Both the position numbers and the translations under genes were made by a program. The notes under the pieces are model-generated. The model had not been told where the DNA came from. It made no database searches and worked only from the letters and a program-made list of their open reading frames with translations. DNA of 62,668 nucleotides, from assembly GCA_002269645.1 (NCBI GenBank), contig NIVC01001559.1, positions 1 to 62,668 of the forward strand. The letters run 5' to 3'. Below, piece by piece: positions 7,489 through 54,935 of this stretch (within the stretch, counting starts at the first letter, position 1; each line of letters starts with the position of its first letter). This stretch comes from Macrostomum lignano. Taxonomy: Eukaryota.

Positions 7489-7571
<83 letters not shown>

Positions 7572-27837: not shown

Positions 27838-27933
<96 letters not shown>

Positions 27934-28302
27934 CACATCTATATTTCAATAAAGAATTTCAATAATGTGTATCGCCTCCTGTGACCCTCTGTTCACCTGC
28001 CCAGTGCCCTGCCAACGGCAGCAGTAACGCTAGACAAATGGCTGCCAGCCGCGTCATCGAAGCTGACGGCAGCGGCTTCGGCATCGGCATCGGCAGCCAG
28101 TAGTGCATCGCCGCCTCGTTATCAGCAGAATCCGAAGCCGCCGCCACCGTCGCCGAAGCGCCGCCAGCCGCCGCCGCTGCGGGACACCGGCCTGACTCGG
28201 TGGATTCGCGCTAGCAGAGTCAAGTCAGAAACGGAAGCTTCATCCAAAGCTGAGGCGGAAGAAGAAACAAAGCCGGCCGTGAAGAAGCCGCGTCTCGAAT
28301 AA
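23595..28302 (+). CDS. HMCES: HMCES / SRAP-domain abasic-site crosslinking protein, with a 1-bp frameshift at ~26353-26356
   Basis: join(23595..23614,24670..24792,26124..26468,26994..27077,27154..27213,27293..27408,28005..28302). Motifs: N-terminal MCGRT with catalytic Cys2, YN.PP, MKWGLVPSW, NARVETLMEKASFR, RRCVLLCEGFYEW, YSFTVIT, IHDRMP|AIL, VSSHVNSTRNN. All junctions are GT-AG and in phase except the internal frameshift. Confidence 0.93.
23790..24465. repeat. 24-bp minisatellite, ~28 copies, HMCES intron 1
   Basis: Unit GATAGATACAGATGCTAATAGGGG. Confidence 0.95.
25545..26010. repeat. 33-bp minisatellite with a ~131-bp higher-order repeat (3 copies), HMCES intron 2
   Basis: Unit GTTACTGTCCCCAGGTCATCCTTATGACCCTCT; the variant block GTGTTTTTAGGTCATTCG...CCGAGATT recurs at ~25686, 25817 and 25948. 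Confidence 0.9.
26520..26920. repeat. 28-bp minisatellite, ~14 copies, HMCES intron 3
   Basis: Unit CTCAGTTGCTGGGCCAGCCTCCCAGATC. Confidence 0.95.
27815..27932. repeat. (CTGT)n microsatellite, HMCES intron 6
   Basis: Direct reading. Confidence 0.95.
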
Positions 28303-31531: not shown

Positions 31532-33240
31532 CTAGTCAGCAGCAGGCCTCCTACTCCCGGTGCACGTGCACGACTGGCACAGGTAGCGCAGAGAGGCGAG
31601 CAGTCGGTGTCGCAGTCGCCGCCGACCTCTGTTCGCGTTGCGGATGCTGTCCCGTCTGTCTTCAGCCCTAGGCTGAATCTCCTGTGGGCTGATGAATTCT
31701 TGCTCGATACCGTCGCTTCTTGAGTCCAACCTTGGGATGGCCGGCGGCGGCGGATCCGACGTCGCTGCTGCGTATTCGGTGGCCGGCATGGATGGAGTCT
31801 CAACCGGCGCCGGCTGCAGCTGCGGCAGCTCCGGAGCTTCCTGATTACTGCATGACGTTGATAGAAGAAAAAAATAGACTTTTAAGGCTTTGACAAATTT
31901 GAGGTTTCGAATTTTTATCATTTTATACTTACGCCTCTGATGTATGAGCTTGTTCTTGTTCAGTTTGCTGTTGCTGCTGCAAATCCTCTGGCTCATCAAC
32001 TTCGGGAGCCGGCGGCAGGCGTTGCGCATCCAGAGTCAAACCGTCTCTAAAGGGTGCGGAAATCGCCTTGAAAATTTACATTCATGCATGTGGCTTTAAT
32101 TGATCAATTTAAGAAAGTTACTGTTCAGTTGATTTACCTTCGCTCAGCTGCTGGCTTCTGTTGTTGCTGGTGCAGCTGTTGCAGCCGTTTCTCTTCCTGA
32201 CTGCTCTGAGCCGGTGACGAGGAGTGCCGGCCCAGGGTACAGCTGCGTTGCTTTTCTTGCGTTTTTCTGCTTGTGTCAATGCTCCCCTCGCTGTGTCCAT
32301 TTCGCAAGCTGGCGTCTGGACGTTGCAGTAGCGGCGGTTGTCCTCTGAGCTCAATTCCAGTCACAAAATTAGCTGTGACTTCAGGACTTCTCGCGCACAA
32401 GTTAGCTGCATGCTCGTGTCCAGTTGTTTTTTCACCCGACTGGTCAGGCTTCGCAAAAACAGCTGTGGCAGCGGCAAGAAGCTCGGCATTCTCGTTAGCC
32501 GCCGCTGCCTGTTGAGCCTCTGGAATCGCAGCTGCGGCGTTGTCTTCATTTGCCGGGGCCTCCTCGTCATTGTCGTCCCCTTTTGGCAGACTGGTTGCCG
32601 CAGCGTCGTTGTTGACATCCGTGCCGATTGCGGCTGTCGTACCTTCCATTGCATCGGTTTGGACGCCACTTCCCATCGGCGGTGAGGGACTTCGTACGAC
32701 TGGCGTCGGAGCCGCCTGCCCTGTTCCAGCCGCTGTGCTGTCTTGTTTACGTTGGAACAGATTGTAGCGAGCTGGAGCCGACTCATGCCTACATACGGAC
32801 GCGGTGGCAGCGGCGCCCGTAACTCTACCTAGGACGTTGTCTTGGACTAGCTCGCTAGACGACTCTTGATCATAAGCGTCGGTGGCGACACTTGCTACTG
32901 AACTTTCGGTAACAGCAGAGACTTCAGAGCCATTCTCCGAAGTGGGCGACTCCGATGCCTCGGCTTGGTCTTCGCTAGATGCGTCGTCCGATGCTGCACA
33001 GTCAGGACTCGGCTGCGATGCGAAGAGCAACTCCCTGTGCGGCTCAGTCAGCTCAGGAAGACTCGCCGGTCGCTGCTGGCTCGAGCCGTCGCCCAAGGAT
33101 GAGTCGCTGGTCTCCAACTCGATTCCACGCAAGTCCTGAGCCGAGCGCGGTAGCGAGTTTGTAGACGACGACAGCGTGTTTTGTTGCGATTGGCCTTCTC
33201 TGAGTGGAAATTCGTCACTATGGTCGCTTCCTTCTGCCAT
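31532..33240 (-). CDS. Orphan gene O1: ~510-aa acidic, A/S/E/Q-rich predicted-disordered protein with a C-terminal basic helix and Cys cluster
   Basis: complement(join(31532..31847,31933..32046,32138..33240)); both introns phase 2 with GTAAAT/GTAAGT donors; 1533 nt open; paralogous to 45903-48532. No known family recognised. Confidence 0.75.
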
Positions 33241-33447
33241 ACTGGTGTTGAACTCGCTTCTGCTTCTTTTCTTGGTAGTTTTTTTACAGTATATAGGAGT
33301 TTTGTATACTGTGTATTTTCAGGATCACAAATTCTTTTGGGCCTTTTCATTTATCAAAAGAGTAATTATGTTGTCCCTATGCTCTTAAGGCTTGGAGATT
33401 TTTACGTGACTCAACTCTGAGAAACAGTTGCTTTGAATTCTCCACCC

Positions 33448-33453
33448 TTTATA
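33448..33453 (-). promoter_or_regulatory. TATA box upstream of orphan gene O1
   Basis: GCTATAAAGGG on the minus strand ~210 bp before the ATG, followed ~35 bp later by TCAGAGTTGAGTCA (Inr-like / AP-1-like). Confidence 0.45.
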
Positions 33454-33964
33454 GCAGCTATGCAAAACCCAATGGCCAGCTGGGGAGTCGGGTCTGAAAG
33501 TCTGTTTGTTGGTTGGCTGTTGGGGTTTGAAAAATCGAGCTTTCTCTGCACCTTTGTCTCTCTGTGAATTCTATCTTCTATGTACGTGTGTACAGTATGT
33601 GTAACACCCCACTCTGCCCTAATGCGACATGCAGCTTTTATTGGCCTGTCTAATGCATGTCTGCCTTTCTCTCTAGTGGTTGAATCTGCTATATATCTAG
33701 CTAGCTATCACAGTGCGCATGCATATTGTCACAAATCTGTGGACTTCTGCATTTTAAAAGCGACTAAAGGATGCATTCTATTACTTTTCCTGACTGAATA
33801 GTCAGACTTTTTGTTATTATTTTATTATTCTCTAATTAACAAGCATACTTTTATTATATTTAGTTTAAAAACGCCACGACACATTGAAAATAAAGCCGAG
33901 AAAATTGTATAAAAGATTCATAGAAATGAATGCGTCCAATAGTAATAATTAATAATAATTGACT

Positions 33965-34170
33965 ACACCTGCCCTAATGGGCAGATGTGCAACCGACAGC
34001 ATCTGAAGGCTGCGTACGGCTGTTCAGTCCAAGGACTGGAGGGTCGCCACACACATCCTCAATTACCGCAGCTAATGCTGGCAACCATTTTACAGCTGGG
34101 TGAACTGAAGCAATGCAGAGTTATAAGTGTCTTCTCTTGCTTAAGGACTCAAATTGGTTCAGATGACCGC
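33965..34170 (-). mobile_element. CORE-type SINE, 5'-truncated copy
   Basis: Minus strand AAGACACTTATAACTCTGCATTGCTTCAGTTCACCCAGCTGTAAAATGG parallels the MIR CORE; same 3' end as 14371-14620. Confidence 0.75.
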
Positions 34171-34674
34171 TTTATACCGCGAATCGATAGAAATGGGGTG
34201 GGTGAGGGAGAGACTTTTCTACAAAGTTTTTTGTCACAAAACTTGTCTAGGTAGGCACCAAGATTTGCGGTCTATTTCTATATGGTCTTTAAATGCGACT
34301 CAGTTTGTGCATGGTTTACAGGGAAGTGCAGAGGAAGAGAACCACCCAATTAGCAGGTTGTAGTTGTACGAGTAACTACATGTTCTGCCCGCCCGGGCTA
34401 GTGGACACTCAAGACTGAAGTTGATGAAGACAAGTTGGGTTGGCATGCTGATGAAAAAGACACGTTTACAAGCTAATTCGAAAATATCCAGCCATAAGTT
34501 CGTAGGTCGACAAAGTTTGATTTTTAAAAGTCAATTTTACTACAGCTTCAAATGGTATGTCCTGAAAATTTTCAATTCAGAATTAAAGCGCACTCTGTCA
34601 GAGACTGACAGTTCAGATTAGCAAAGCAATGACGACTGTAAGACCGAATTAGATCCCTTATACTTCGTACGTCA

Positions 34675-35627
34675 CAGTGGTCGGCAAACTCCGGTCCGCG
34701 GGCCACATGCGTCCGGGTAGCTAGATTAAGCGCACCAGGAACAAGCGCGCATTTTCGCACATATTTTACATGGTTCGGAATAACCATGTAATTCCGTAAT
34801 CCCGGAGAACGGACCAAAACCTGAATAAGCGCGCAGTTAACTTTTCACAGACCGGAATAAGCGCGCAGCATTTTTGATCGATACAGGAAAAAGCGCGCAC
34901 GAGTTTTCCCATGACTTGGAACAAGCGCGCCAAAATTTTACCCGCTTTCGGAATGAGCGCACAGCTGCTTTTGTACTGACGGGATTAAGCGCGCAAATGA
35001 TGATTTTAACTAACTTTTATGATTTTTAGCGAACTTCTCAGCTGCAGTTTCAACTTTCAGCTAAGCTTTTAGCTTTTAGCAATTTTAACTTTGTAACCTT
35101 GCTTCGTCTTAAATACATAGTTTAAATTCGACTTTAATCTTAGTTCTGTTGAAAATCTGTGCGCGCTTATTCCAGGACTTTTAAAAAACGTTGCGCGCTC
35201 TTTCCTGTGCCTAGGAATATGGATGCGCGCTTATTACAGTATTTTGACAAAACTTTTCGCGCTCATTCCTGTATCGAGGAATATCGCAGCGCGCTTATTC
35301 CAACATTTTTCTGTGCGCGCTTGTTCCCTGCGCGCTTATTCCGACGTGTGCAAAAAAATACACGTGCGCGCTTATTCCTGGCGCGCTTAATCAGCCCTCC
35401 CATGCGTCCCGCGAAGCCTCTCTATCCCGCCCTGTGGTCCTGTCAAACTTCACAATCCGGCCCGCTCAAGGTTTATCTCTTCTAAGCTCTCCTCTCTCTC
35501 TCATCTCTTCTGCTTTCCTCTCCTCTCCTCTGGCCCGCAGGCATACGCTGGAGTTTCTATCGGCCCTCCCTTACGATAAAAGGACCTGTCCAAAGTACCA
35601 TGTGGTGGGGTGGTAGAAAGTTCACTG
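34675..35627. mobile_element. hAT-type MITE (CAGTGGTCGGCAAAC) hosting a nested element
   Basis: The family head at 34675-34714 continues at 35410 with GCGAAGCC...CAATCCGGCCCGCTC and the CT-rich core. Confidence 0.7.
34715..35400. mobile_element. MULE-like non-autonomous element, 686 bp
   Basis: Exact 9-bp TSD CATGCGTCC (34706-34714, 35401-35409); long imperfect TIRs built of AATAAGCGCGC / GCGCGCTTATT repeats. Confidence 0.85.
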
Positions 35628-35785
35628 CTTGTTTTAAGTATATTTGAAACGTTTATAGTGAGTGAGTGCTTCTCGTGATAAGTTTAAATCGGAAATCTTG
35701 GAAAAAGTTTTGAATTTTAAAAGCCTTACTGCAAAGGATAAAGTATTTTACCTAATCTAATCGCTCTAGAAGATAAAGACATAAT

Positions 35786-36515
35786 TAAGGATGTCGACCC
35801 CGGGGAGCTTGTCGGGGAATACTCCCCGGGGAATTAGACCGGGGACCCCGAGGAGAAAAAAAAGCATTTTTAACTTAATTTTTGCCATTTAAATAAGAAA
35901 ATGATTCACAGTAAAGCTGATTGAAACTCTGTCTATGCTTTTTTGCCGCATAACTGCTGTTTCAATGTATTATTTCAAACACAACATACGCTTGAATATT
36001 TTTTCACTACGAGTCTTTCAATCAAGCAAATTGCACGTAGAAACCCGTCAGGAAAAAAGAAGCCTCACTGACTACTGTGTTGGTCTGCGTTGACGGCTTG
36101 ACGCATTTGACGCAGGCACAGCGCTGCGTCCTGCGTCAGTCACTGTCGCACGCATACTCTCTATTAGACAAGGACAAAATGGTGATTTATCTGCAAGAAA
36201 TAAAAATTCCGATTATAAAAACAGTCTCATTCATTAATTATCCTCCCACAAGCGTAGCTGCTGAGCATGCATTTTCCGCCTCCTGAGTCTGGACTCTTTC
36301 TGACAAAGGTGTGCGCAGGATTTGGCAATGCCACGTTGTCAAATACAGTTTTAAATAAACATTCCATTGTTTAAAGCTTTTACCCTTGCGCCTTGAACAT
36401 GTAGTCCAAAGCTTAAATCAAAGTAAAAAAATACCACTTAAGATCTAAGTTATCCGCCGTTTCCCCGAGGTCCCCGGGGGATGATAGTAAATTACCCGGG
36501 GAATCGACATCCCTA
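35786..36515 (+). mobile_element. Internally deleted hAT element retaining a dimerization-domain remnant
   Basis: TIRs TAAGGATGTCGA / TCGACATCCCTA; exact 8-bp TSD GACATAAT; peptide PPTSVAAEHAFSAS at ~36243-36285 matches the hAT C-terminal PxTSVxxERxFS motif. Confidence 0.88.
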
Positions 36516-38209
36516 GACATAATGAAAATTCTTAGTAAAATTCATCAAATACGGGACGCAAGCCAGAATGCAACTATAATTCAGAACGCGCCCAGTTTTT
36601 CATCGCTGCTATCTACGCTTATAGCTCGTAGCTTAGTTAATTCAATTGTCAACCAAAATTTATGACCAGAAGCTCAAGGCTTGACATGGCTCATGCCTAC
36701 TTATTCTTTAGGAAATCATTTCTTAAGCATCTAGACACGATATATTTAATTTGCATAAAATGCGCTTTTGGGCATTATGTATTAAACAGTTTGTTAATCC
36801 GCACTATAGCAGAAGGCAAAGGCGGCGGGATAGCAGCGAGCAAAAGCAGCTTTGGTTTTCACTAATAATGTCAACCTTTAGTTATGTTATTCAACCGTGC
36901 AGAAGAGGCAGAGTTGGGGAGAGAAAGATGGCAACTGCATGACTAAGGATTTCTTTATAACTGGAACTAGGGAATAGAAAAATAAAAAAATCGCATATAT
37001 TAGGCCTCTGTTGGTAAGGAGGTTTCTCAACCAGATTCTAGTTATAGAGTAATCCTTGCACTGGCAAGGGTGGGCAGGCGTAGGAATTTTCGTCGCCGCC
37101 TCCCCGCACCAATAAAAAAATCTTCCCGACAAGGGGGGCGTCGCCGCCGCCCCACCCCCCCCCCACCCCAGGCTCGGAGGAGGGTTGGGGTTAACACACT
37201 TTACAGGCTTTAATAGCTATAGTTTTAGTCATACGACGCAGACGGCACCGACGCAGACACCCTCCATAACTACCTCCTTTACTTTAAAATTTTTTCTGCT
37301 ATCACACATCAAAGAGACCGCCGTATAATTTTATTATTGCCTTCCAAACTGTGTGCGGCTTTTATGCAAGCTACAAGCTTACACTGCCAAGTTGATTTAT
37401 GGTGATTCTCAAGTATTTTTTCAACAAATTTCACGGTTGAATAAGCCAAGCATAGGGCTGTTCTTGAGTCAGAATAATTTACATTACTTGTTCTGAGGTC
37501 TAGCCATCAAAGGTGCCGCACTACCGCAGTGCATCATTATTAATATGCTATTCTTGCCTTTGCTGCTTGTGCCGCCTTTCGCCGCAGCAAAACAAACGAT
37601 AGGCAGAAGCCACTGGAAGTTTCACTGTTTATCTGTTGGCTCTCTCACAAGATCAAAAGATTGCACATTCATTTATGCAGAGCTAATTTGAATTGGAGGC
37701 TGCGAGGTGAAGCTATAGACTCTAAATCAGCGAAATAAAGCGAATCAGATCGCTACCTGATTTCAAATTCAAATTTAATTATGTGCAAGAAAATGGCTTG
37801 CACTTATCAACAATAATCCGGTTGTTGAGGTCAGGCCAATCTACGTATCACGGAGGAGTTCTATTGCTTTAAGATATTAGTCTGATACCTGATGGAGTTC
37901 AATGGTGTTGGATTGACCATGTTTGTCGTCTGAGTCTTAGACTATTATAAAGTTAGAGAAGTAAATGAAGGGGAAAGACGGGAAAGTGACGGGGAAGTAT
38001 ACATACTTCTAATCTCATACTAGTAGCTATAGCCTATATTTTAGCATAGGTCTTACATGCCATTTGGTGGTTATTGTAGCTATAGGCGAATTGATGGAGC
38101 AAAACGCATATAGGATGGAAAGCGCGTTCTGTGCATTGGCACAAGGTATAATTGCATTGTAAAGTTATATAGAGATACGAGGCCAACTCCTCCGTTGGCG
38201 GAGTGAGGG

Positions 38210-39990
38210 GATAGAACTCCCATCGCCAGAATTTCATTCCCCGAAACCATCAGCTGAATCCAATGACACGAATCCCATCGTCCAAATCCTCTCCAAATCC
38301 TATATTAACCTCCCAAAAACCATGTTGTTTTACCTGTGTGCAAAAATTGACTGCCTGCCATCGTCCAGACTGAGACTCTCGTCTGTCTCCTCTCTCCTCT
38401 TTGCTCTCTCATCTCTAATCTCTCCTATGTCCTCTCTGCTCTCTCATCTCTAATCTCTCCTATCTCCTCTCTGCTCTCATCTCCTCGCTTATCTATCATT
38501 TCTCATGTCTACTCTCTTATCTCTCCTCACTACTTTCTCCTCTCAACTTTTTCCTCTCTCCTCTTTTATCTCTTCTCTCTCCTCTCCTTTATCTCCTCTC
38601 TGCTCTCTCATCTCTCTACTTTCTCCCCTCTCCTCTCTCCCTTATCCTCTTGCTTCTCTCTCCTCTCTCTCCCCTCATCTCTACTAATTTATCTCTTCTC
38701 TCTCGTCTTTTGGCTCTACTCCCTCTGTCTCCTCTTTCTCCTCTCTTACCCCTCTCCTCTCTCCTCTCAATTCCTTCATCTCTTCTCTCGCCTTTATTCT
38801 CTTTTTTTCTTTTCTCTAATCTGTCCCTTTTAATTCTCTCTTTTCATGTTCTCTTTCATCTAATCTTTTATCTACTCTAGCCTTTTCTCTTTTCTCTATT
38901 CCCTTTCAATTTAACCATTTCATCCTCTCCATGAAACAGCTATCATCAAAATCCTCTCCGTTAAACTGCAATCTAGCTTGTATCATCCTCCTTCAAGCTA
39001 CAATCCATCGATTTAAAAAATACTATCTCTATCAAATTTCAGTCAATCAAGACTATGAAACTGAAGTCTATAAAAATATGATTTTTACTTGTCTGGGTAT
39101 ACGTCAAAAAATCTTCCAAATCTTCCAAATCCTCCATAAAACCTCTGAAATATCATAGCATGTTTTCCCTGTTTACAAAAATTGACTGCCATCGTCCAGA
39201 CTGAGACTCTCTCCTGTCGCCTCTCTCCTCTTTGCTCCTTTATCTAATCTCTTCTTTCTGCTTCCTGCTCTCCATCTCCTCTCTCATCTCTACTCTTACT
39301 TTCTTATCAATCACCTCCCATCTCTCATCTCTCCCCTCTATTTTCTCATCTCTATTCTCTCATCTTTCCCCTTTTGCTCTCTCATTTGTTTTTTCATCTC
39401 TCTCTTCTCTCCCTTCTCTTCTCGCTTCGCTCTCTCCCCTCTTCTCTCTATCTCTTCTCTCCTGTCTTCTCTCAATTCTCTCTATCTCTCCTCTTCTCTC
39501 TCATCTCTCATCTCTACTCGCTTATCTATCGCCTCTCCTCTACCCTGTCCTCTCTCTCTCCTCTTTTTTCTCTCTCGTCTCTCCTCTCTGCTCTCAATTC
39601 TCATACTCCTATTTTCTCTCTTACCCTCTCCCTCTTCATCTCTCATCTTTCCCCTCTTCTCTCTACCGTCTCCTGTCTCATCTCTCCTCTCTCTTCTCTC
39701 TCCTCTGTACTATCTTATCCCTCCTCTCTCCTCCCATCTTTCCTCCCTCCTTTGCTCTCTCATTTTCCTCTCTCCCCTCCTTTCTTCCCTCTACTTTCTC
39801 TTCTCTTCGCTCTCCCTCTTCATCATTCCCGCCTCACTCCCCTCTTCTCTCCCCTCTGGCTCTGTCGTCTTTAATCTCTTATCTCTCATATCTACTGTCT
39901 TTCTATCATCTTTCTATCCTCTCTTCTCCTTGAAATCTCTCTTCTCTTTACTCTCTTATCTGACGGACTGAAAGCGCCGATAATCAAACC
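38210..39990. repeat. Two tandem copies of a repeat head, each followed by a 0.5-0.7-kb CT-rich tract
   Basis: CAAAAATTGACTGCC...ATCGTCCAGACTGAGACTCTC at ~38341 and ~39176, each running into polypyrimidine low-complexity DNA. Confidence 0.7.
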
Positions 39991-40855
39991 AATTGAAATT
40001 TGTTACCAGCCTCCTCCATTACTGAATTTACTCAAATGATAGCTGGCCTGAATTTGTGTACTCAACCCCCCCCCAACTACAATCTTGGCAGAAATTTTAA
40101 AAGTATGGAATCGTTTTTTCAATGCTGTGCTTTTTGTTTTCATATTTAAAGCAAATAACTTATATCCCCGAATTCAGCGTTGCAAGATCCTTCCAGCAAT
40201 ATAAGTCTCTCCTCTCAAAGTTAAAAAAAAGGAACAGTTAACGTCTGAACTTCCCGGTTCAAAGCATTAAGTATCGAGTGTACATTCACCTGCCTGCTGT
40301 TTATTCATTGAATTTCACTGCCCAGCTAATATACAGACAGGCTGCCTTTTGAAAGGCGCCGATAGTAAAACCAATTGAATCTCGACACAGTCCTATCTAT
40401 CTGTTTACAATGTACATTGCTATGTACACTCAGCCCAAACCAACCCTCCGTTCTGGAGGGAAGCATTAAATTTAACTGAACCCCCAACACGCGGGGTTTT
40501 ATTAGCATTGAACCCAGAACACGCATCAACCACCCCTCCAATACACAGCGACCTGCGGGGGAGGTTGGGGTGGTTGTTTTTACAATAATGCCACTGGAGA
40601 GGCAAAGTGGCCAAAGAAGGTTAAGAAAACAGCTTTTTGCTTTTTTAACGGACTTGACTTTTAATTTTTCAACATTAAAATAGCCTATTTGTTGCGTAGG
40701 AAAATTCTGAATTGATATATGTAAGTCCCGCATTTGAGTTGCCAGCCGTCTAGGAGGAGATACGCGTTAAACCCGGCCGGTCGATCGACCCACTCAGCTT
40801 TAGATATAAGATTAAACCCGGCCGGTCGATCGACCCACTCAGCTTTAGAGAAGAG

Positions 40856-43800
40856 TGTTGCAATGTTATTCCAATGTACCTAGTTTCTAGAAGTTTCCTT
40901 TCCCCTTCGCGCATTCTATACGAGTAAAATTTCCAAATTAAGTAAAAGAAATTTCTGCATTTTTCTTCGAATTTCCATAACAAAATATTTCTACGCGGAA
41001 CCTTTACATATCTTATAGTTTAATTATTAGCCATATTCTTATTCAACGCATTTATCCGTATTAGCTACAGTTTACATTATAATGTTGTATCTTTGTTATA
41101 ATTCTAAAGAAATTTCCAGAACACCGTTAATTTTGCTATAAATATACACCAGGCAAACCCAGCTAATAAGCAAGTGTTTTTCCGGTAATCTCGATTATCG
41201 ATAATAAATAACTGAACCACCGCTTTCAAGCCTCATTTATTTTTCAGACCCGCTACAACTGGTCCGGTGAGGCGGATAAATTGACTAGCATTTAATTCAG
41301 ACCATTCAATTCATTCAGCGTGTACGATCCAATGGCGGAAGGAAGCACCAACACACCATCCGTGGTCAGCCAGCAGCCCTCCGGGGTCAGCCAGCAGCCC
41401 TCTGGGGTCAGCCAGCAGCCCACACAAGGAGCGAGTGTCGCGGCGGCACCTGCCGACCCGCCTGCGGTAGCTGCGGTAGCCCTTAAAGTACCGCCATTCT
41501 TTCGTGGCAACCCCGATGCATGGTTTCGGATGTTGGACGCTCAGTTCGACCTTCGAAACATCACCTCCGAGGTATCGCGGTTCAACCACCTGATCTGTCA
41601 TCTACCGGAGGATATCGCAGCTGTTTTATTGTCTGTGGACACTCCGTCCAACTATACCGCACTGAAGCAAGCCGTACTGAAGATGCTTCAGAAGAGTCAG
41701 CAAGAGCGAATTAACGAGGTCATGAGCGTCTCTGACCTGGGAGGAGACAAACCCAGCATCTTCATACAGCGGCTGCAGGCCAAGATGGCTCAATGCAATA
41801 TCAAGGAGAACCCAGACATGGTCAAGGCCACGCTTCTCCGCTGCCTCCCGGCAGAGCTACGCCTTCATCTGTCCGGTTTTCAGGACGAAGATCCAGCACG
41901 GCTCGCTTCCATCGCGGACTCCATGCTGGCTATTCAGCAGTCATCTGGCCACCGCGTCCACGCAGTTCAGAGTACGGCAGGCGACTCAAAGACATCGGGG
42001 CCACGGCAGAAGTCACAGCTGACATCCAGCATGGAACCCTTCTACCCAGGCCAAAAACCAGTAGTCTTGGTCGACTGCAAAGCTCGACAGCTGGTGGATC
42101 CGACAACTACATTCCATACTCCACCGCTGCCTGTCACTACGACGACCATCGGCAACTTCAGCGTCACTCCGAACTACCCCGACGACTGCGATCCACGCGT
42201 CAGGCGGCTGATCGACCGATTTCAGGATACCTTTACCTACGTGGAGGGAGGTCGGCTGCCGCCGGCGGACGTGATCAAGCACGACACTGTTCATAGGGTC
42301 GACACCGGCGGACATCAGCCAGTGCACGCCAGAGCGCGTCAGCTTCATCCGGAGAAACTTCGCATCGCTCGCGAAGAATTCCAGCAACTCATCGATGCCG
42401 GGTACATCCGTCCATCCAAGAGTTCATGGGCTTCGCCACTCCACATGGTTCCGAAGAAATCAGACGGCAAACCATCTGGCAAGTGGCGACCGTGCGGCGA
42501 CTACCGAGCGCTCAACAGCGCTACCAAGCCAGACAGCTACCCGGTCCCACACATCCAGAGTTTCACGCGTTATCTCCATGGCGCGACGTTGTTCAGCAAG
42601 CTCGATCTGGTTCGCGCTTACCATCAGATCCCCATCGCGGAAGAGGACATCGCCAAGACTGCCATCATCACGCCGTTTGGCCTCTTTGAGTGGACTAGGA
42701 TGCCATTCGGACTTCGCAACGCCGCGCAGACCTTCCAGCGCTTCATCGACTCCGTCCTGCGCGGCCTGCCTTGCGTCATCGCCTACTTGGATGACCTTCT
42801 GGTCTACTCGAGGTCGGAGGAGGAGCATCTCCAACATCTAGAAGCCGTGTTGACCCGCCTAGCTCATCACGGCTTGAAGGTTCAGCTCAGCAAGTGTGTT
42901 TTCCTTAAGAGCGAAGTCACCTTTCTCGGCCACCACGTTTCCGCCGACGGAATCCGACCTCTCGAAACGAGGGTCGAGACCATCAAAAACTGGCCGGTTC
43001 CCCGCGACGCTGCTGCCCTGCGACGTTTCCTCGGCGTGATCGGTTTCTACCGACGTTTCATCTCCGGTTTCGCATCCACCGCAGCCCCATTGCAGGATCT
43101 GCTCACCGTAGCACTACGGTCTCCTCGATCCTACCAATGGAGCGACATCCACCAAGCCGCATTCGACGACCTCAAGAAGAAGCTCGCCGAGCGTCTCCTG
43201 CTGTACCACCCCGATCCAGACTGCTCGGCCTATCAGCTGGTCACGGATGCCTCTGCTACCAGCGTCGGAGCCGCATTGCATCAGACAGTCGGAGAGCAGA
43301 CCACCTTGATCGGCATGTTCAGCAAGAAGCTCTCTGCCGCCCAGCGAGCCTATTCAGCATTTGATCGAGAGCTACTAGCCGCTTACCTTGCCGTGCTTCA
43401 CTTCCGGAACCTGATCGAGGGCAGGCACGTCACGGTCTTCACAGATCACAAGCCTCTTGAGCAGGCATTCCGACACAACTCCCACGGCAACTCTGACCGC
43501 AACCAGCGCTACATGAGCATCCTGTCTGAGTACGTCACCGACTTTCAATATATCCGTGGCTCGGACAACGTCGTCGCCGATGCACTTTCCAGACTCGACG
43601 AACCGACCGCCATCGCAGCCATTCAGCAGGGAGCAGCGCCAACTGACCTGTCAGCAATCGCCGATCAGCAAGCCGCCGACAACCTCTCCGAATCAGACCA
43701 TTGCCGCTTCTTTTCACTTGGAGACGGCCGTCGCGTACTCTGCGAGACCTCCACGGGTTACCCTCGCCCGGTCGTCCCCATCTCCATGCGCGAATCACTG

Positions 43801-45554
43801 CTGAAACATTTTCACGAACTCGGTCACTACGGATTCCGCAGGACCGCCAAACTGATCATCAGCCGCTACTACTGGACCGGCATGCGCGCAGAGATCAAGG
43901 TCTTTTGCAGGTCATGCGAGGTTTGTCAGCGCACCAAGATAGACCGCCACACGACGGCCGGCAGCGCTGCCTTCAACCTCCCATCCAACAGGTTCGAGAC
44001 GGTACACATCGACATCGTCGGCCCTCTTCCAGTTCCCGAAAGGAAACATGATACTCAGTGCGGTCTTACACCTCGTTATCTCCTTACCATGATTGACCGC
44101 AACACGGGCTGGCTAGAGGCCGCACCACTCGAGACCGTCACAGCACAAAGCGTGGGAGCAGCCTTCATCGCTTCCTGGATTTCTCGCTTCGGAGTGCCCC
44201 TGTACGTCATCACTGATAGAGGACCACAGTTCGAGTCCGAGCTCTTCGAGACACTCTCGTCCACCGTGGGTTTTCACCGCCTACGCACCACGGCGTACCA
44301 CCCACAGTGCAACGGGAAGATCGAGCGCGCCCACAGGACTCTGAAGACGATGCTTAAGGCGCGCGGTCCTGCATGGCTCGACAACCTCCCATTGGCACTC
44401 CTCGCCATGCATGTCGCTCCGGACGATTCAGGCATCAGCCCATTTACCAGGCTCACCGGCGAGCATCCGATGCTTCCACGGGTCATCGTCAGCGACAAAG
44501 ATCCTAACTCCATTCAGATGAGCTTAGACCACCTCTTGGAGCAGCGACCAAGAATGCCGTCCACCACACCGCATGTGCCTCAGGAGCTATGGTCGACCGG
44601 CAAGGTTTGGGTCCGCGTGGACAGGGTGAGGAAGCCGTTGGAAGCGCCGTACTCCGGACCATACCCAGTCATTCGGCGCACTCCCAAGTTTTTCATCATC
44701 GAGTTCCGCCCTGGTCACGAAGAAGCCATCTCCATCGACAGGCTCAAACCCTGCAGGTCGACCCCAAGGCCACCGACACAGAGCAGGCCTAGGCAGACCG
44801 TACAGCCGACTTCAGGGCAGGAAGAAACCTCTACACCAGCAGGACACCAGGACGACACGGAGGCCACACCAACATCCACTACAGCGAATACACCGAAAGT
44901 CGACGAGGAGGCACCGACGACCCGAACAAGAAGTGGACGACGCGTCCGATTTAAAGCCCAAGATGACTACCTTTACTTCTGACATCACCTGACCTCATCT
45001 GTATCATAGTCGCATCTTGCTATCCATTCGTTACAGACTTTGGACCCGACCGTCGACATCTTCAGTGTATATAGCCCATTCGGTCATTAATTTGTACATA
45101 CTGCGCGATCATCATTCTATCTAGGGACTCCGTCTCCGGTGGGGGGGACTATTGTTGCAATGTTATTCCAATGTACCTAGTTTCTAGAAGTTTCCTTTCC
45201 CCTTCGCGCATTCTATACGAGTAAAATTTCCAAATTAAGTAAAAGAAATTTCTGCATTTTTCTTCGAATTTCCATAACAAAATATTTCTACGCGGAACCT
45301 TTACATATCTTATAGTTTAATTATTAGCCATATTCTTATTCAACGCATTTATCCGTATTAGCTACAGTTTACATTATAATGTTGTATCTTTGTTATAATT
45401 CTAAATAAATTTCCAGAACACCGTTAATTTTGCTATAAATATACACCAGGCAAACCCAGCTAATAAGCAAGTGTTTTTCCGGTAATCTCGATTATCGATA
45501 ATAAATAATTGAACCACCGCTTTCAAGCCTCATTTATTTTTCAGACCCGCTACA
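40856..45554 (+). mobile_element. Ty3/Gypsy LTR retrotransposon, CsRn1-like clade, young, protease-less
   Basis: 402-bp LTRs 40856-41257 and 45153-45554 (TG...CA; 2 mismatches found by eye); PBS TGGTCCGGTGAGG at ~41260 (tRNA-Tyr-like 3' end, tentative); PPT GGTGGGGGGGACTAT before the 3' LTR. Confidence 0.95.
41332..44982 (+). CDS. Single gag-pol ORF (1216 aa from ATG): Gag, RT, RNase H, integrase, GPY/F; no protease
   Basis: Gag [15 protein letters not shown]; [31 protein letters not shown]; RNase H LVTDAS...[10 protein letters not shown]; integrase HELGH...[31 protein letters not shown]; GPYPV...ISIDRLKP. No D[TS]G motif between Gag and RT. Confidence 0.95.
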
Positions 45555-45902
45555 ATAGAAGGGTGCATTTTCATGAAAACACAATACAAGGTGTTGCACT
45601 GAGAGCACTGAGGAAACACTACGAGTATAGGGCTGCCACACCGTGGAAGCAACACACTAGGGGAACGTAGGGGTGCCGCATTGAGGGTACAACAAAGGGA
45701 GCGCGACACTGGGCTTAGGAGGTAGCTCTCCTTAAGACAGCTGTCTCTGGGGGCGCAAATCAGGTGAGTCAAAATTACGGTAGGGCGCAAGACCCCTAAG
45801 CCGTGGATCCTCCCTAGGAAAAGACTGTCTACAATGCAATATTTAACAGACAATGAAGAGCAAATGCTGTTTAGACTTTATGAGATATCTTTGAAACGAC
45901 TA

Positions 45903-48532
45903 CTAATCTTCCACGTTGATTCGTTGCCCAAGGCAGCTGCATGAGTTGCACAGAGGCCGCAGCCAAAGCCAGATTCGAGTCGCTATTGGTCTTGGCCGTT
46001 GATGCTCTTCATATTGATCGTCATGCTGTAGTTGAAACTGCCTTTGATGACCGCGTCTGCTGAGCTGCCAGTTGACTGCTTCTGCGTTCATGACCGAAGG
46101 CAGACTGTCGTAACCGCGCAGCAACGACTGCCGCTGGGCTTCGTCTTCCGCTGGCTCATCTATGACGTTAGCCAAGCCGTCAGGCGAGTCTTCCTGAGCT
46201 AGCGGTAGGCCGGAGCCACCGCCAGCGCTACAAACAGTTTGAGAGTCTTTATCAGTTCAGGTGGTCAAACAGGTGCTTTCGTCACAAAGCTTCATTTTCG
46301 CAACGTCTAGACCTAACCGACTAGCATCCATGCACTTTCATAAACCTTAAGGCTTTCAGAGAGTCGACTAGCATGATCAAACTAATAGAACGCTGCTATA
46401 GCAAATAGAATGCTTTTCGTTTTGTGAAATTAAGTTAGAATGACTGGGGATTTATGAAATTTATGGTTTTCAACCCCATTCCGGAAAAGACTTGTAAATT
46501 TACGAGCATGTAATACATGGTTAGTGCTTGTGAAACAATTACCCTATCTCAGACTCACCAGGTTGGTGTCACGCGGTTCAGCTGTTGGTCACTTGGCTCG
46601 TCAAACAACGCGTCTGGTACCAGGTCTTGCGTATCAGGACAGTCGGGCAATTGCAAACCCTCGGCCGAAGCAGATGATGCAGTGGCGGCGCTAGTCGACG
46701 ATACGGAGCTGCTCTGAGCGCTTTTTGTCGCTGTATTCTGGTCAGTTTGTTCCATTCCGTCTTGTCTACAATACAAGACAAGTTATATGATAAATTATTT
46801 TGATAGCTAAAGAGAAAGTATTCAATTCGAGAGAACCCCTAAAAAATTAACAGCAATTTTTTTACCCTTTTGCAATCTGCGTTAGGCTTGAACTCAGCTG
46901 CTGCTGCTTCTCTGGGTGCGGCAACGAACGCTGTTCAAAGTGTTCAACCCGAGCGACAACCAACTCTGGGTGTTGGTTGGAATTGATGGGTTTTGGCAAC
47001 TGCTCCGATTTCAGCTTAATCCCAGCTACTTCGGGACTGTTGCTGGAAGTTTCGTCAGCACCCTTCCGTGAAGCAGGTGGCCGTTCATCTCTTTCAGTTA
47101 TTTTCAGTTGTTTCGCATTCGGCACGCTGGAAGAGTGATTGAGTTTCAAAACTGGATGGCTAGAATCTACAGATGTTGATGAGCTGCTTGACGTTTCGTT
47201 CGTAAGTATGATGCAACTAATCTCTGGGCGTGGGCAATCCCCTTCGATTGCTGAAACATCTCCACTCGGGTTTGGTACATCGACCAACTCAGGCGCAGCC
47301 TCCTCTGCCTGGTACTCTGTTCTTGAAACTGTAGTGGTCGGATCTTGCGAAACTGAAGCCGCTTCTTGATTAAGTTCCATTCTGGCTGCAGAACTCTGAG
47401 TTGCCAAACATTTTGGCTGCTCCTCCACCTCAACTTCGATGCACGGTGCAGAACTCCGAGCTAACGAATGGTCAGGCTCCTCCATTTGGTGCTCGATGCC
47501 CGGTGCAGAGCTCCGAGCTAACGAATGGTCAGTCTCCTCCATTTGGTGCTCGATGCCCCGTGCAGAGCTCCGAGCTAACGAATGGTCAGGCTGCTTCATT
47601 TGGTGCTCGATGCCCGGTGCAGAACTCCGAGCTAAAGAATGGTCAGTCTCCTCCATTTGGTCCTCGATGCCCGGTGCAGAACTCCGAGCTAACGAATGGT
47701 CAGTCTCCTCCATTTGGTCCTCGATGCCCCGTGCAGAGCTCCGAGCTAAAGAATGGTCAGTCTCCTCCATTTGGTCCTCGATGCCCGGTGCAGAGCTCCG
47801 AGCTAACGAATGGTCAGTCTCCTCCATTTGGTGCTCGATGCCCGGTGCAGAACTCCGAGCTAACGAATGGTAAGTCTCCTCCATTTGGTGCTCGATGCCC
47901 GGTGCAGAACTCCGAGCTAACGAATGGTAAGTCTCCTCCATTTGGTGCTCGATGCCCGGTGCAGAGCTCCGAGCTAACGAATGGTCAGTCTCCTCCATTT
48001 GGTGCTCGATGCCCGGTGCAGAGCTCCGAGCTAACGAATAGTCAGTCTCCTCCATTTGGTGCTCGATGCCCGGTGCAGAACTCCGAGCTAACGAATGGTC
48101 AGTCTCCTCCATTTGCTGCTCGATGCCCGGTGCAGAGCTCCGAGCTAACGAATGGTCAGTCTCCTCCATTTGGTGCTCGATGCCCGGTGCAGAACTCCGA
48201 GCTAACGAATGGTCAGTCTCCTCCATTTGGTCCTCGATGCCCGGAGCAGAACTCCGAGCTAAAGAACGGTCAGTCTCCTCCATTTGGTCCTCGATGCCCC
48301 GTGCAGAGCTCCGAGCTAACGAATGGTCAGTCTCCTCCATTTGGTGCTCGATGCCCGGTGCAGAACTTTGAGCAATGGGCTCTGGTATTGCGGATTCGCC
48401 CGTCTCGAGGCTGTAGGTAACAATATCTTGCACTGAACGGGACAGAGAGGTTATGGACTGTGCCGGCGAGGCCTGCTGTGAGGTGCTAACTCTTCCAGGG
48501 AAATAATCCTCTTCTCCACCGCCCTCGGCCAT
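45903..48532 (-). CDS. Orphan gene O2: ~732-aa paralog of O1 with 16 x 19-aa internal repeats
   Basis: complement(join(45903..46227,46559..46765,46866..48532)); both introns phase 2 as in O1; 2199 nt open; shared N-terminus (MAEG...SL.RS.QD....LET) and C-terminus (LRPLCNSCSCLG). Confidence 0.78.
47446..48365 (-). repeat. 57-bp coding tandem repeat, ~16 copies (SSAPGIEHQMEETDHSLAR)
   Basis: Period 57 nt, in frame with O2 exon 1. Confidence 0.95.
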
Positions 48533-49413
48533 TTTAAGGTTAATCTTTAGTCAACTGTAAATATTCTTTCTTTCTAAAACGTTTAGCGTTCTATGCCAAG
48601 TGTACGATATTTAGGTATGGCTTTATATACTGTTTAGAGTGAGAATGAGAACACTATCCAATAAAAGTTGAACAAGCTTGTTATTGGATAAGAGATAGAA
48701 GGCGACCACAACCACTAGTTTTAGTTCAGAAAAATAGTAAAGTCTAAGCGTGTTGCTAAAAATAAATCGCACTGTACATTAAAGGTAGTGTACTATAAAT
48801 ATTTCTACTGAATATTGAACTAATAAAAAGTACAATTGAAAGCTAAATTGTTTTTTTCTATTATAAAAATGACGATCCATCAGGATCTAGATACTGTAAC
48901 TAATATTGATTAAGCGATTTTAAAACGCAATGATTTTAAAATGCACAATCAATTAGCTTTTTTCAAATAAACAAGCAATAGAAGCGTAAGATTCTATAGT
49001 TCCTCATCCATTAACTTATTATTAATGCTCCTAGGTAGCGAGTCGGCGTATTTACGCTGGTATACACGTTTGCAGTTTTCCAGCAATGCTGCTGTTGAAG
49101 AAAAACAAAGGGTGACTACTGAAATGTGTCTACTGGTCTAATAAACAATAGGCAAAACAGAACGCAAACTATGTGTCCTCAAAATAGTTGCTGATGTGAC
49201 CATTTATTGTTTAATTTTTGCCATAAGGGCCATTTAAGGCTTTGATTGCTTGTTTTTTTCCATAGGTCGGAAAACTCCGACCCGCCTTGGGTCCTTTGAA
49301 ACTTCACAATGGCAATCCGGCCCGCTCTCAACGTTTGTGTCTCTTCTCTGCTCTCTTCTCTAATTTTCTCTATTCCATTTTCCCTCTCCTCTCTCCCGTT
49401 TCTCCTCTGCTCT

Positions 49414-49878
49414 ACAACAACAACAACAAGGTACTGCTCCCGCCGGCCACGCAGTAGCCAGAAAGGGGGAGCAGTCAGAAAGCGCGTCTCTGGGCCATTG
49501 CCCTCAGGAAGTCGCATCCCCCTGCTTGGTCCGGGGCGCCAGCGTCACTCAGAAGTCGGTCAGGGTATCGCACCGTTCGCCCTTGGCCTCGCCTCCGCGG
49601 TCCCTGCAGCTTGAGCAGCAGCACGTCGTGTAGCGGCTCAGGACAGCGGGCCTCCGACCGGATGACGTGGCCAGCCAGTCGAAGTCGCCGCCCGCGCAGC
49701 AGGTCAGAAGGCCGCGTCAGGCGCGCCCTAGTGTAGACCGCGGCATTGGTCTCGCTGCCTGGGCCGCTGCGCACTCCGAAAGCCGCACGCAGCATTGCCG
49801 CATGCGCAGCGTCCAGCTGCCTCTCCAAGGCGTCCGTCAGGGTCCATGTCTCGGCGCTGAGGAGAGGAGGAGACCAAG
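49414..49878 (-). mobile_element. 5'-truncated RTE-clade LINE, inserted in the CT core of a MITE
   Basis: Minus-strand peptide LLSAETWTLTDALERQLDAAHAAMLR...RRLRLAGHVIR...RRRGQGR typical of RTE C-termini; (TTG)n tail; 10-bp TSD CCTCTGCTCT (49404-49413, 49879-49888). Confidence 0.88.
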
Positions 49879-51262
49879 CCTCTGCTCTGCTCTCCTCCTC
49901 TCCTCACCTCACCTCTCCTCACCTCACCTCACCTCTCCTCTCCTCTCCTCTTCTCCTCTCCTGTCATCTCCTCTGCATGCATTCATATGCTCTACATGCA
50001 TATAGGAGAAGCCCTCAACGCTGATTTGTCAATATTCGAGCTACTCGAACTATCTTGATTCGTAGTTAAAAATTTCGGTTCGTGTTAGATCTTATTTAAA
50101 CAGTAATACGTTGATGATAATGCCTTAGAGTCCTTGTCACATTGTCCTCAACTACGGAAAATAATAAGCACTGACAAGACCCTTGCTTCAGAGTATTGTC
50201 GAATAAAAAACAATTTAGTACCATATTGTATTTTTACACTGTTTACTTGTCTGGGCGATTTGAAAAGGCTGCGGGAGGCGAGACAGACAGAGACAGGGAT
50301 GTGGAGAGAGAGAGAGAGCAGAGAGTTTGTGTGTGGGGGAAGGGGTAGCCATAGTTATTTCTAGCCAACGTTTCCACACGCTTTTACTCATGCAGTGAGC
50401 CACCAACCCCCCACTTCACTTGGCTCTAAAGTGGGGGGTTAAGAGATGCCGTCCCAGATTTCCACAGTTGCTGGGGTCTAAGCTAATCGATAAATTCTCT
50501 TCCACTCCTCTCTTCGCCATGCCACCAGCACCAAACATGAAAATGCAATACGAGCTTTATGGCTTCGTGTGATAATTCTGAAGCCGCTTTATCTATAATC
50601 TTAAGTCTGACAACAAGTCGGTTTCTGTTGCCTCAGTGGGTGGTCTACCCAGTACGCTCGTAGCATTAGACATTTAACCATATACAGGCTAATTAACTGG
50701 TCTCATTAAATTCAACTCAACTCTAGCCTTGCAAGTGCCAGGCAGCATATAAAAATTCTACGCCGGTATTGTGTTAGCGTTAGAACTGAGCTCTTCAGTG
50801 AGGTTTTGAGTATAGATGAGATACAGAGAGAACAGTGCGACTTAGTCGCTCTAGTCAGAATAAGTGTTTAGCCCCCGCCCCTTATAGCCGAAGGAAACTA
50901 GAATAAATAAGTCCGCTCTGCATTCGCTACTCCGTTCTATGCCAAAAACAAGCCATAAAACTACACCATTAGTGCTTAAAATTTTACCCTGCCCTGTCCC
51001 ATACGGGTTCATATTCCAATCCCAATTTTGCAGCATCTGACGTGATCACATGATAGCCGTATGCTATACTATATCTCACAATGTCCTTATCAAGAAGCTT
51101 GGGTGATATGCCCTCAGATTCCGGCTTTATGGGGCGCAAAAAATTACTTGTACAATATATAATAGTACAATAGTTTTGATTGATTAGATATTAAAAGCAA
51201 ATAGCCACTTCTCAAATGCATTTTAATTTAAATAGTACGAGCTAATGGAGTCTGCAAGATTT

Positions 51263-51514
51263 CTAGGCGCCACTCCACGACTGCAGACGCCGCCTGCTTT
51301 CTCGACGCTGCTGGCCACCGCTGCCGCCTCCTCCATCTCCTCCGTTCGAGTCCGGTGAGCCTGTCAGCTCGACGTCGCCGTGGCTTCTTGATCGGGTTCG
51401 AGCCAGCACCGGCCGACGCTGATCTGCAGGTCCGGCTTGAGCTGTCTCGAGCTCCAGCGCAGGCAGCGTGGCGCTCAAGTCCGAGACTTCGCTGCTGAGC
51501 CTCGCGTTTTCCAT
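51263..51514 (-). CDS. Short ORF O3 (83 aa), truncated relative or exon of the O1/O2 family
   Basis: GC-rich coding-like block; LSSEVSDLSATLPALELET resembles O1 LPRSAQDLRGIELET; RRESRRRL resembles O1 RRDSI...RRRL. Confidence 0.45.
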   Translation of the reverse strand: MENARLSSEVSDLSATLPALELETAQAGPADQRRPVLARTRSRSHGDVELTGSPDSNGGDGGGGSGGQQRRESRRRLQSWSGA

Positions 51515-53319: not shown

Positions 53320-53680
53320 AAATGCTGAACATAAAAGAGGCACAATGTCAAACAAAAGTGGCACCATTTCAAACATTAAAGGCCACCATGTCAAACATAT
53401 ATGACTCCATGTCTAACATTAAAGAGCCACCATGTCGAACATAAAAGAGCCACTATGTCAAACATCAACGAGTCACCATGTCAAGCGTACATACATGACT
53501 TCATTTCAGACATTAAAGTGCCACCATGTCAAATATTAAAGAGCCACCATGTCAAGCGTATAAGTGACTCCATGTCAGACATTAAAGAGCCATCATTGCA
53601 TACATTAAAGTGCCACCAGGTCAAACATTAAAAAGCCACAATGTCAAACACAAAACAGCTACCATGTCAAACATAAATGG
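53320..53680. repeat. Degenerate ~21-bp tandem repeat (CCACCATGTCAAACATTAAA-like)
   Basis: Recurring CCATGTCAAACAT core. Confidence 0.75.
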
Positions 53681-54935
53681 GGTGCCTACTATCTTGGAGT
53701 GCTTGCTATCTGGAGATGCGTGCTATCTGGGGGTGCTTGCTATCTGGGGGTGCTTGCTATCTGGGGGTGCTTGCTATCTGGGGGTGCTTGCTATCTAAGG
53801 GTGCTTGCTATTAGGTGGATGCTTGCTATCTGGGGTGCCTGCTATCTTGGAGTGCTTGCTATTAGGTGGATGCTTGCTATCTGGGGTGCCTGCTATCTGA
53901 GGGTGCTTGCTATCTGGGGGGTGCTTGCTATCTAAGGGTGCTTGCTAACTGGGGGTGCTTGCTTTCTAAGGGTGCTTGCTATTAGGTGGATGCTTGCTAT
54001 CTGGGGGTGCTTGCTATCTGGGGGTGCTTGCTATCTGGGGGTGCTTGCTATCTGGGGGTGCTTGCTATCTAAGGGTGCTTGCTATTAGGTGGATGCTTGC
54101 TATCTGGGGTGCCTGCTATCTTGGAGTGCTTGCTATTAGGTGGATGCTTGCTATCTGGGGTGCCTGCTATCTGAGGGTGCTTGCTATCTGGGGGGTGCTT
54201 GCTATCTAAGGGTGCTTGCTAACTGGGGGTGCTTGCTTTCTAAGGGTGCTTGCTATTAGGTGGATGCTTGCTATCTGGGGGTGCTTGCTATCTGGGGGTG
54301 CTTGCTATCTGGAGATGCTTGCTATCTGGGGGTGCTTGCTATCTGGGGGTGCTTGCTATCTGGGGGTGCTTGCTATCTGGGGGTGCTTGCTATCTGGGGG
54401 TGCTTGCTATCTAAGGGTGCTTGCTATTAGGTGGATGCTTGCTATCTGGGGTGCCTGCTATCTTGGAGTGCTTGCTATTAGGTGGATGCTTGCTATCTGG
54501 GGTGCCTGCTATCTGAGGGTGCTTGCTATCTGGGGGGTGCTTGCTATCTAAGGGTGCTTGCTAACTGGGGGTGCTTGCTTTCTAAGGGTGCTTGCTATTA
54601 GGTGGATGCTTGCTATCTGGGGGTGCTTGCTATCTGGGGGTGCTTGCTATCTGGAGATGCTTGCTATCTGGGGGTGCTTGCTATCTGGGGGTGCTTGCTA
54701 TCTGGGGGTGCTTGCTATCTGGGGGTGCTTGCTATCTGGAGATGCTTGCTATCTGGGGGTGCTTGCTATCTGGGGGTGCTTGCTATCTGGGGGTGCTTGC
54801 TATCTGGAGATGCTTGCTATCTGGGGGTGCTTGCTATCTGGGGGTGCTTGCTATCTGGGGGTGCTTGCTATCTGGAGATGCTTGCTATCTGGGGGTGCTT
54901 GCTATCTGGGGTGCTTGCTATCTGGGGGGTTGCTT
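53680..54935. repeat. 17-bp minisatellite, ~74 copies, with ~170-bp higher-order blocks
   Basis: Unit TATCTGGGGGTGCTTGC; the variant CTAAGGGTGCTTGCTATTAGGTGGATG recurs, mostly every ~170 bp. Confidence 0.95.

Follow-up and report, generated by a model that had tools for sequence, protein, structure and literature searches.

An ancient pair of orphan genes with conserved termini and a diverged acidic body in the flatworm Macrostomum lignano

Paralemmin and palmdelphin are long, acidic, hydrophilic and largely unstructured proteins that attach to membranes via a cysteine cluster at the extreme C-terminus, located beside basic residues. More generally, basic and hydrophobic residues followed by C-x-S-C-x-C near the C-terminus form a kind of sequence on which peripheral membrane proteins are S-acylated, and in the C-terminus of H-Ras (GCMSCKCVLS) this motif bears two palmitates and one farnesyl group. 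The window analysed here, a stretch of 62,668 nucleotides of Macrostomum lignano contig NIVC01001559.1 (assembly GCA_002269645.1), encodes two paralogous genes, O1 and O2, whose predicted products are similar to paralemmin and palmdelphin in plan, combining an acidic disordered body with a C-terminal cysteine cluster. Unlike paralemmin, O1 and O2 lack a CaaX box (both continue for 10 residues past the third cysteine, to a terminal D), a match to the Pfam Paralemmin family and any sequence similarity. The H-Ras tail has the same cysteine spacing, a six-residue likeness that may be coincidence, but the last H-Ras cysteine lies within a terminal CaaX box, which O1 and O2 do not possess, and neither protein contains a GTPase domain.

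Two broader classes of proteins also offer points of comparison. With proteins encoded by coding variable number tandem repeats (VNTRs), mucin-type or otherwise length-polymorphic, O2 has in common an in-frame array whose copy number varies between near-identical contigs. In contrast to the mucin types, however, O2 lacks a signal peptide and a glycosylation-type S/T/P repeat, its unit being acidic and histidine-containing. Orphan genes for disordered proteins with short terminal motifs share with the pair the lack of outside homologues, low complexity, predicted disorder and a drifting body. This class is descriptive and has no defined mechanism, and the age of the O1/O2 duplication and the conserved intron phases exclude a very recent de novo origin for the pair. 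The descriptive part of the present account is put forward with high confidence: the genes are spliced and anciently paralogous, their termini are constrained, their acidic, disordered body is not, and repeat length varies.

Gene models, paralogy and conserved ends of O1 and O2

The two genes, their conserved ends, the repeat array of O2 and a nearby small open reading frame (ORF) are located as follows.

31532..33240, minus strand: O1 gene, exons 33240-32138, 32046-31933 and 31847-31532, 510 aa; identical to PAA66420.1 / BOX15_Mlig027183g2, hypothetical protein
33094..33240, minus strand: O1 N-terminal module, codons 1-49, MAEG..(D/E)xFPxR...SQQ...SLxRSxQD.....LET..S; supported by the shuffle test (0/2000) and by non-synonymous versus synonymous differences against O2 (pN 0.39, pS 0.80)
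31532..31591, minus strand: O1 C-terminal tail LRYLCQSCTCTGSRRPAAD plus stop codon, preceded by the basic stretch RGRRRLRHRLLAS; supported by shuffle test, motif scan and pN/pS
45903..48532, minus strand: O2 gene, exons 48532-46866, 46765-46559 and 46227-45903, 732 aa; paralogous to O1, intron phases identical
48386..48532, minus strand: O2 N-terminal module, codons 1-49; supported by BLASTP, shuffle test and pN/pS
45903..45962, minus strand: O2 C-terminal tail LRPLCNSCSCLGQRINVED plus stop codon; supported by shuffle test, motif scan and pN/pS
47436..48367, minus strand: in-frame coding minisatellite in O2 exon 1, 57 nt x 16.4 copies at 94% identity, encoding the 19-aa acidic unit SLARSSAPGIEHQMEETDH
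51263..51514, minus strand: O3, an ORF of 83 aa conserved on a related contig, whose relation to O1 and O2 is not demonstrable

Both O1 and O2 are genuine genes that undergo splicing and have been annotated. All four introns have GT-AG borders with pyrimidine-rich acceptors and lie in phase 2, and exon 2 begins with R|DGL in O1 and with G|QDGM in O2. A preliminary description of the window, made from the sequence alone, had proposed two minus-strand three-exon genes with phases 2,2, and its coordinates, phases and exon-2 starts all proved correct. It had also regarded the genes as unrecognised, which they are not. In a protein search, the spliced O1 product matched a M. lignano hypothetical protein over its full length with 100% identity, and the corresponding cluster holds three near-identical entries of 510/511 aa, among them PAA66420.1 (BOX15_Mlig027183g2), which maps to the contig of the window (21532-43240, reversed). 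As the GenBank annotation of this assembly derives solely from genome-guided RNA-seq transcripts, from which non-coding and repeat-overlapping ones were dropped (PMC5730564), the annotation of O1 implies that it has transcript support. For O2, the UniProt fragment A0A1I8GB67 (P0004) is identical to residues 524-669 of the model and crosses both exon junctions. Furthermore, the O2 copy on the sister contig NIVC01001512.1 (L001) is annotated as a gene at 107-4322 with a product of 1261 aa, the length expected with the same two introns. All five copies of O1 and O2 observed have an unbroken reading frame, including one that carries 42 repeat units. The pair is thus annotated but uncharacterised, one among many lineage-restricted hypothetical genes of this genome.

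After its 146 aa of exact match to the O2 model, A0A1I8GB67 omits 13 nt at 46094-46082 (GTCATGAACGCAG, bounded by GT and AG), which shifts the frame and removes the cysteine tail. Since 13 nt is below normal intron size, this omission is probably artefactual, arising in the model or the assembly, or else may mark a deletion allele. A look-up of contigs that encode this fragment returned none.

Based on sequence comparison, O1 and O2 are true paralogues that arose by one ancient tandem duplication. Local alignment of their N-terminal 60 aa scores 96 compared with 26 +/- 5 for shuffled sequences, and that of their C-terminal 60 aa scores 58 compared with 23 +/- 4.5, with none of 2000 shuffles reaching the observed score at either end. 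BLASTP aligns the first 49 aa with 45% identity (E 3e-7). At the other end, the last ~20-50 residues are alignable far above shuffles, the motif actually common to both proteins covering ~17-20 residues. It reads LRxLCxSCxCxGxR followed by six residues, the final one D, which places the end of the protein 10 residues beyond the third cysteine. All five copies seen have this cysteine motif at the same distance from the C-terminus, and the position of the stop codon is likewise kept. By contrast, the middles of the two proteins are unalignable, with a score below the shuffle mean that was equalled by 1489 of 2000 shuffles. The conserved termini and exon-2 starts and the non-aligning, freely evolving middles of the preliminary description are thereby borne out, the latter also by a ratio of non-synonymous to synonymous divergence (dN/dS, omega) of ~1 in the part of O2 exon 1 that follows the repeat.

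Both ends have a proportion of synonymous differences (pS) of 0.80 between O1 and O2, which is saturated, and a proportion of non-synonymous differences (pN) of 0.39-0.42. Because synonymous sites are saturated, the duplication is old, and because pN has stayed this low while everything between the ends has lost detectable similarity, the ends have been under purifying selection. Three pieces only are kept by selection, namely the N-terminal peptide of ~47 residues, the exon-2 start (R/Q)DG(L/M) and the C-terminal tail.

The middle of O2 tolerates a coding minisatellite of 16 copies in the window versus 42 units on L001. The window is unusually rich in minisatellites, many of them non-coding, and the O2 array may simply express a local mutational habit of the genome. 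The 19-aa unit was also considered as an amplified form of the N-terminal SLxRS...LET motif. This origin was rejected, since the best ungapped register falls at residue 29 in both proteins, yet scores as high were obtained in 785/5000 and 2486/5000 shuffles. An antisense ORF of 339 aa (47401-48420, plus strand) and a 144-aa ORF in another frame traverse the minisatellite. Both are artefacts of a 57-nt unit that contains no stop codons in those frames.

O3 had been proposed as a third member of the family, a placement that was not sustained. It shares with O1 only the pentapeptide LELET, and a motif scan found in O3 neither the MAEG...FP...SLxRSxQD...LET module beyond LELET nor the LCxSCxC tail. 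Its similarity to O1 and O2 lies within the shuffle distributions both in pairwise comparison (332/2000 and 1770/2000) and against a profile hidden Markov model (HMM) of the N-terminal module (188/2000 and 1380/2000). With relaxed gap penalties, one comparison reached 28/5000 and the other three of that set did not. O3 may represent an independent small gene. Its counterpart at 2269-2556 of a third contig, NIVC01001189.1 (L002), retains start, stop and frame, the two large indels (9 and 27 nt) leaving the frame undisturbed. Compared with this counterpart, O3 has an omega of 0.88 and a nucleotide identity of 77%, which is not above that of flanking non-coding blocks, and no gene is called at the counterpart on L002.

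Relatives and predicted properties of the proteins

In the databases searched, O1 and O2 form an orphan family with no detectable relatives outside M. lignano. Pfam returned nothing for either protein at E <= 1, and a profile of both ends gave no match to PDB sequences at E <= 10. The meaningful negative for orphan status is a full HMMER scan of the both-ends profile against 1.84e9 cluster representatives, whose sole hits were two M. lignano proteins, O1 and the O2 fragment. Word-indexed protein searches with full-length O1, repeat-trimmed O2 and the two-end alignment likewise returned only O1 or the O2 fragment, but these are weak negatives because low-complexity words fill up the limit of 8000 candidates. 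The suggestion that the family is lineage-specific is in line with these results, and in Pfam, the PDB sequences and the 1.84e9 representatives no match to a known family or to an ORF of a transposable element (TE) was found.

The near-identical M. lignano entries carry the UniRef names 'RING-type domain-containing protein', 'Pecanex-like protein' (for the O2 fragment) and 'GA15393'. These names, together with the paralemmin-like overall plan, might indicate a hidden orthologue of a known family (RING-type, pecanex-like or paralemmin-like) masked by sequence drift in flatworms, many cases of which are reported (PMC5495077). We nevertheless consider such an origin decidedly improbable, given the empty Pfam and PDB searches. 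A regular-expression search of all six frames of the window found no eight-ligand RING pattern, pecanex does not fit proteins without a transmembrane segment, and the CaaX box is missing. Moreover, the three names are mutually inconsistent for one gene pair, which suggests automatic mis-naming. A RING-type zinc finger was accordingly rejected as a candidate on the Pfam and pattern searches, and so was continuation of the C-terminus into a RING finger via a further exon, as the window contains no RING pattern and the stop position is kept in all copies. A Pecanex-like identity was rejected for want of a Pfam match and of a hydrophobic segment (Kyte-Doolittle maximum 0.81-0.94).

TEs and minisatellites abound in the region. 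The TEs include a long terminal repeat (LTR) element (40846-45560), a fragment resembling by eye a long interspersed nuclear element (LINE; 49475-49828) and a DDE-type fragment (58065-58502), and O1 and O2 might therefore be ORFs carried by or derived from a TE. This origin appears extremely improbable. Neither protein contains a TE domain, whereas the neighbouring LTR element scores strongly, both genes are spliced with canonical introns, and searches of the protein databases gave no high-copy matches. In addition, the genes occupy one site per contig with colinear flanks, and the TEs inserted between them are not the same from contig to contig.

O1 and O2 are, as judged from composition and structure prediction, long, very acidic and intrinsically disordered proteins. 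Their net charges are -36 and -76, respectively, and they consist to 62-65% of disorder-promoting residues, with a mean hydropathy of -0.85 to -0.89. In an AlphaFold2 model of O1 from the single sequence, the mean predicted local distance difference test (pLDDT) score is 45, with 395/510 residues (~77%) below 50. The disorder proposed earlier is thus backed by prediction for O1 and by charge and composition for both proteins. So is the claim that no signal peptide, transmembrane segment or globular domain is visible: the acidic N-termini make a signal peptide not evident, the highest Kyte-Doolittle mean over 19 residues is 0.94 in O1 and 0.81 in O2, and Pfam domains are absent.

The sole confident AlphaFold element in O1 is a helix at residues 460-498 (pLDDT 85-95) that leads into the cysteine cluster. 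For the C-terminal exon of O2, the mean pLDDT is 53 and no secondary structure is predicted. An amphipathic C-terminal helix, confident in O1 and unpredicted in O2, was therefore rejected as a common feature of the pair. O1 contains seven cysteines in all, three of them in the CxxCxC arrangement, and the proteins terminate in ...CTCTGSRRPAAD and ...CSCLGQRINVED, 10 residues past the last cysteine, hence without a CaaX box.

Pairs of CxxC and CxC motifs can share zinc between chains, as in the CD4/Lck zinc clasp and the Rad50 hook. The proteins might accordingly be acidic, disordered nuclear or chromatin-associated factors, in which the RGRRRLRHR run of O1 would serve as a nuclear localization signal and the CxxCxC motif would bind zinc, for instance at a clasp- or hook-like site between chains, instead of carrying lipid. 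The invariant CxxC-x-C spacing and the charge of the C-terminal 45 residues of O1, which is +9 beside the strongly acidic body, are in keeping with such a role. However, O2 has not kept the basic run, its C-terminal 45 residues having a net charge of -1, and three cysteines are by themselves insufficient for a zinc site. We judge this reading to be improbable.

Divergence between copies and interpretation of the pair

The extra copies of O1 and O2 are allelic or duplicated contigs of a polyploid genome, M. lignano being described as a hidden polyploid (PMC10468722). The window and L001 are 99.6% identical around O1 and ~96-97% identical around O2. On L002, which carries O1 only, identity to the window is 96.3% in exons and 86.9% in introns. 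The following divergences at synonymous (dS) and non-synonymous (dN) sites were obtained for coding sequences.

O1, window versus L002, whole coding sequence: dS 0.050, dN 0.034, omega 0.67
O2, window versus L001, exon 1 after the repeat: dS 0.080, dN 0.078, omega ~1
O2, window versus L001, exons 2-3: dS 0.008, dN 0.007, only 4 differences in all

The omega values are based on few differences, 56 for O1 and 48 for O2. As to selection on the coding sequences, constraint is found at the ends between O1 and O2 (pS 0.80, pN 0.39-0.42); between close copies, omega is high overall (0.67 and ~1).

The post-repeat part of O2 exon 1 (46866-47450 in the window versus 2760-3360 on L001) has diverged by ~7.5%, whereas the adjacent introns differ by 1-3%, and introns and exons 2-3 taken together by 0-3%. 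Divergence is therefore regionally mosaic, and the excess in this part could reflect a mosaic haplotype, gene conversion or a mutational hot spot beside the minisatellite. O1 displays the opposite pattern between the window and L002, with a dS of 0.018 in the middle of exon 1 (32138-33090) and of 0.06-0.18 in the N-terminus, exon 2 and exon 3, which suggests gene conversion between loci.

L002 contains no O2 sequence, the upstream and downstream flanks of O2 being colinear and ~160 bp apart. Because the split between O1 and O2 is old, this absence represents a deletion. Colinearity between the window and L002 stops ~560 bp downstream of O1, where L002 (11712-21712) continues with a syntaxin gene and not with the SRAP gene of the window, so that L002 is a rearranged or dispersed duplicate locus and not a simple homeologue. 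When the window and three related loci were scanned for the motifs, only O1 and O2 were recovered. These scans, the single ancient duplication and the loss of O2 from L002 contradict the view, expressed in the preliminary description, that the family is expanding locally among TEs.

The high omega values (0.67 for O1 between the window and L002 and ~1.0 for O2 between the window and L001), the deletion of O2 from the L002 locus and the lack of homologues of these low-complexity, disordered proteins among the 1.84e9 representatives would all fit a reading in which O1 and O2 are effectively neutral ORFs on real transcripts, that is, young or decaying proto-genes without function at the protein level, the similarity of whose ends is residual ancestry. 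Such an origin is unlikely, as the ends have remained ~45% identical although synonymous sites are saturated and the rest can no longer be aligned, a pattern that calls for selection at the termini. In addition, intron positions and phases are retained, the frames stay open in all five copies, through 42 repeat units in one, and the omega values derive from small counts in regionally mosaic sequence.

The explanation that we favour, by a modest degree, is that of an ancient orphan pair with constrained ends and a drifting acidic middle, in which the termini are functional modules. The termini would then be the working parts of O1 and O2. The C-terminal basic/hydrophobic tail with its three cysteines may act as a reversible membrane anchor by putative S-acylation, or may mediate a zinc-dependent contact, the N-terminal peptide might serve as a docking motif, and the acidic middle would provide a flexible spacer of largely unimportant length. 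The membrane-anchor reading specifically, which is suggested by the basic/hydrophobic tri-cysteine motif, is tentative and rather doubtful, and a putative role as a scaffold or membrane-tethered protein, proposed in the preliminary description, would draw on this motif as well. More speculative still, and in our estimation quite unlikely, is the idea that O1 and O2 are flatworm-specific, reversibly S-acylated acidic 'bristle' proteins that would hold an N-terminal docking peptide at a variable distance from the membrane, with the O2 minisatellite changing spacer length or valency ~2.6-fold between haplotypes and so producing heritable differences in a scaffold near the membrane.

Several observations weigh against functional modules at the termini, or against parts of this explanation. 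Omega between close copies is high overall, and the loss of O2 from the L002 locus implies that O2 is at least dispensable in one copy. Neither protein ends in a CaaX box, and the O2 tail contains prolines (RPRP, LRPLC) with no helix modelled by AlphaFold. A look-up of the gene identifiers in the M. lignano literature that was searched returned no data on expression level or tissue. Furthermore, 'species-restricted' may mean 'not sampled', as other Macrostomum genomes and transcriptomes are perhaps outside the searched collections.

If the ends are functional modules, the pair would be a clean case from nature of a disordered protein that evolves by the rule 'conserved anchors, free spacer', to which it adds a repeat-length polymorphism and the natural deletion of one paralogue. 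As transgenesis and RNA interference are available in M. lignano, this idea is testable. The pair has no bearing on a long-standing question and does not constitute a multi-gene 'system'.

Neighbouring genes, transposable elements and repeats

Outside O1 and O2, the window contains the following genes and element.

16084-21722, plus strand: homologue of NXF1/TAP (nuclear RNA export factor) with Tap-RNA_bind, LRR_NXF1-5, NXF_NTF2 and TAP_C domains
25981-28302, plus strand: SRAP/HMCES homologue, neighbouring gene
40846..45560, plus strand: LTR retrotransposon between O1 and O2, not part of the gene family, with an ORF at 41320-44982 encoding DUF7041, reverse transcriptase, RNase H and integrase

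For at least 300 nt (40856-41155 and 45153-45452), the two LTRs of the retrotransposon show no difference, and its insertion is therefore recent. L001 carries at 4670-5080 a single LTR-sized stretch that matches both LTRs, consistent with a solo LTR, so that the insertion appears to be structurally polymorphic between near-identical contigs. Next to the element lies a CT-rich low-complexity block of 2.7 kb (38177-40846, GC skew -0.63) that is absent from L001. A similar block in opposite orientation is found at 7301-8270 (GC skew +0.54), and both yield long, spurious ORFs rich in serine and leucine. Two degenerate TE fragments are present on the minus strand, one at 49475-49828 that resembles by eye the C-terminal part of a non-LTR element and has no Pfam match, and one at 58065-58502 with a weak match to the DDE_3 transposase below the Pfam cut-off.

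Minisatellites are also associated with the neighbouring genes. The NXF1/TAP gene contains an array of 39 nt x 42 at 18379-20032, between the LRR and NTF2 exons, and the SRAP/HMCES gene one of 28 nt x 13.7 (26535-26918), with repeats of 33/131 nt at 25542-26006 just upstream. Further minisatellites of high identity are located at 23749-24461 (23 nt x 31), 53679-54938 (17 nt x 74) and 56964-57332 (21 nt x 17.6).

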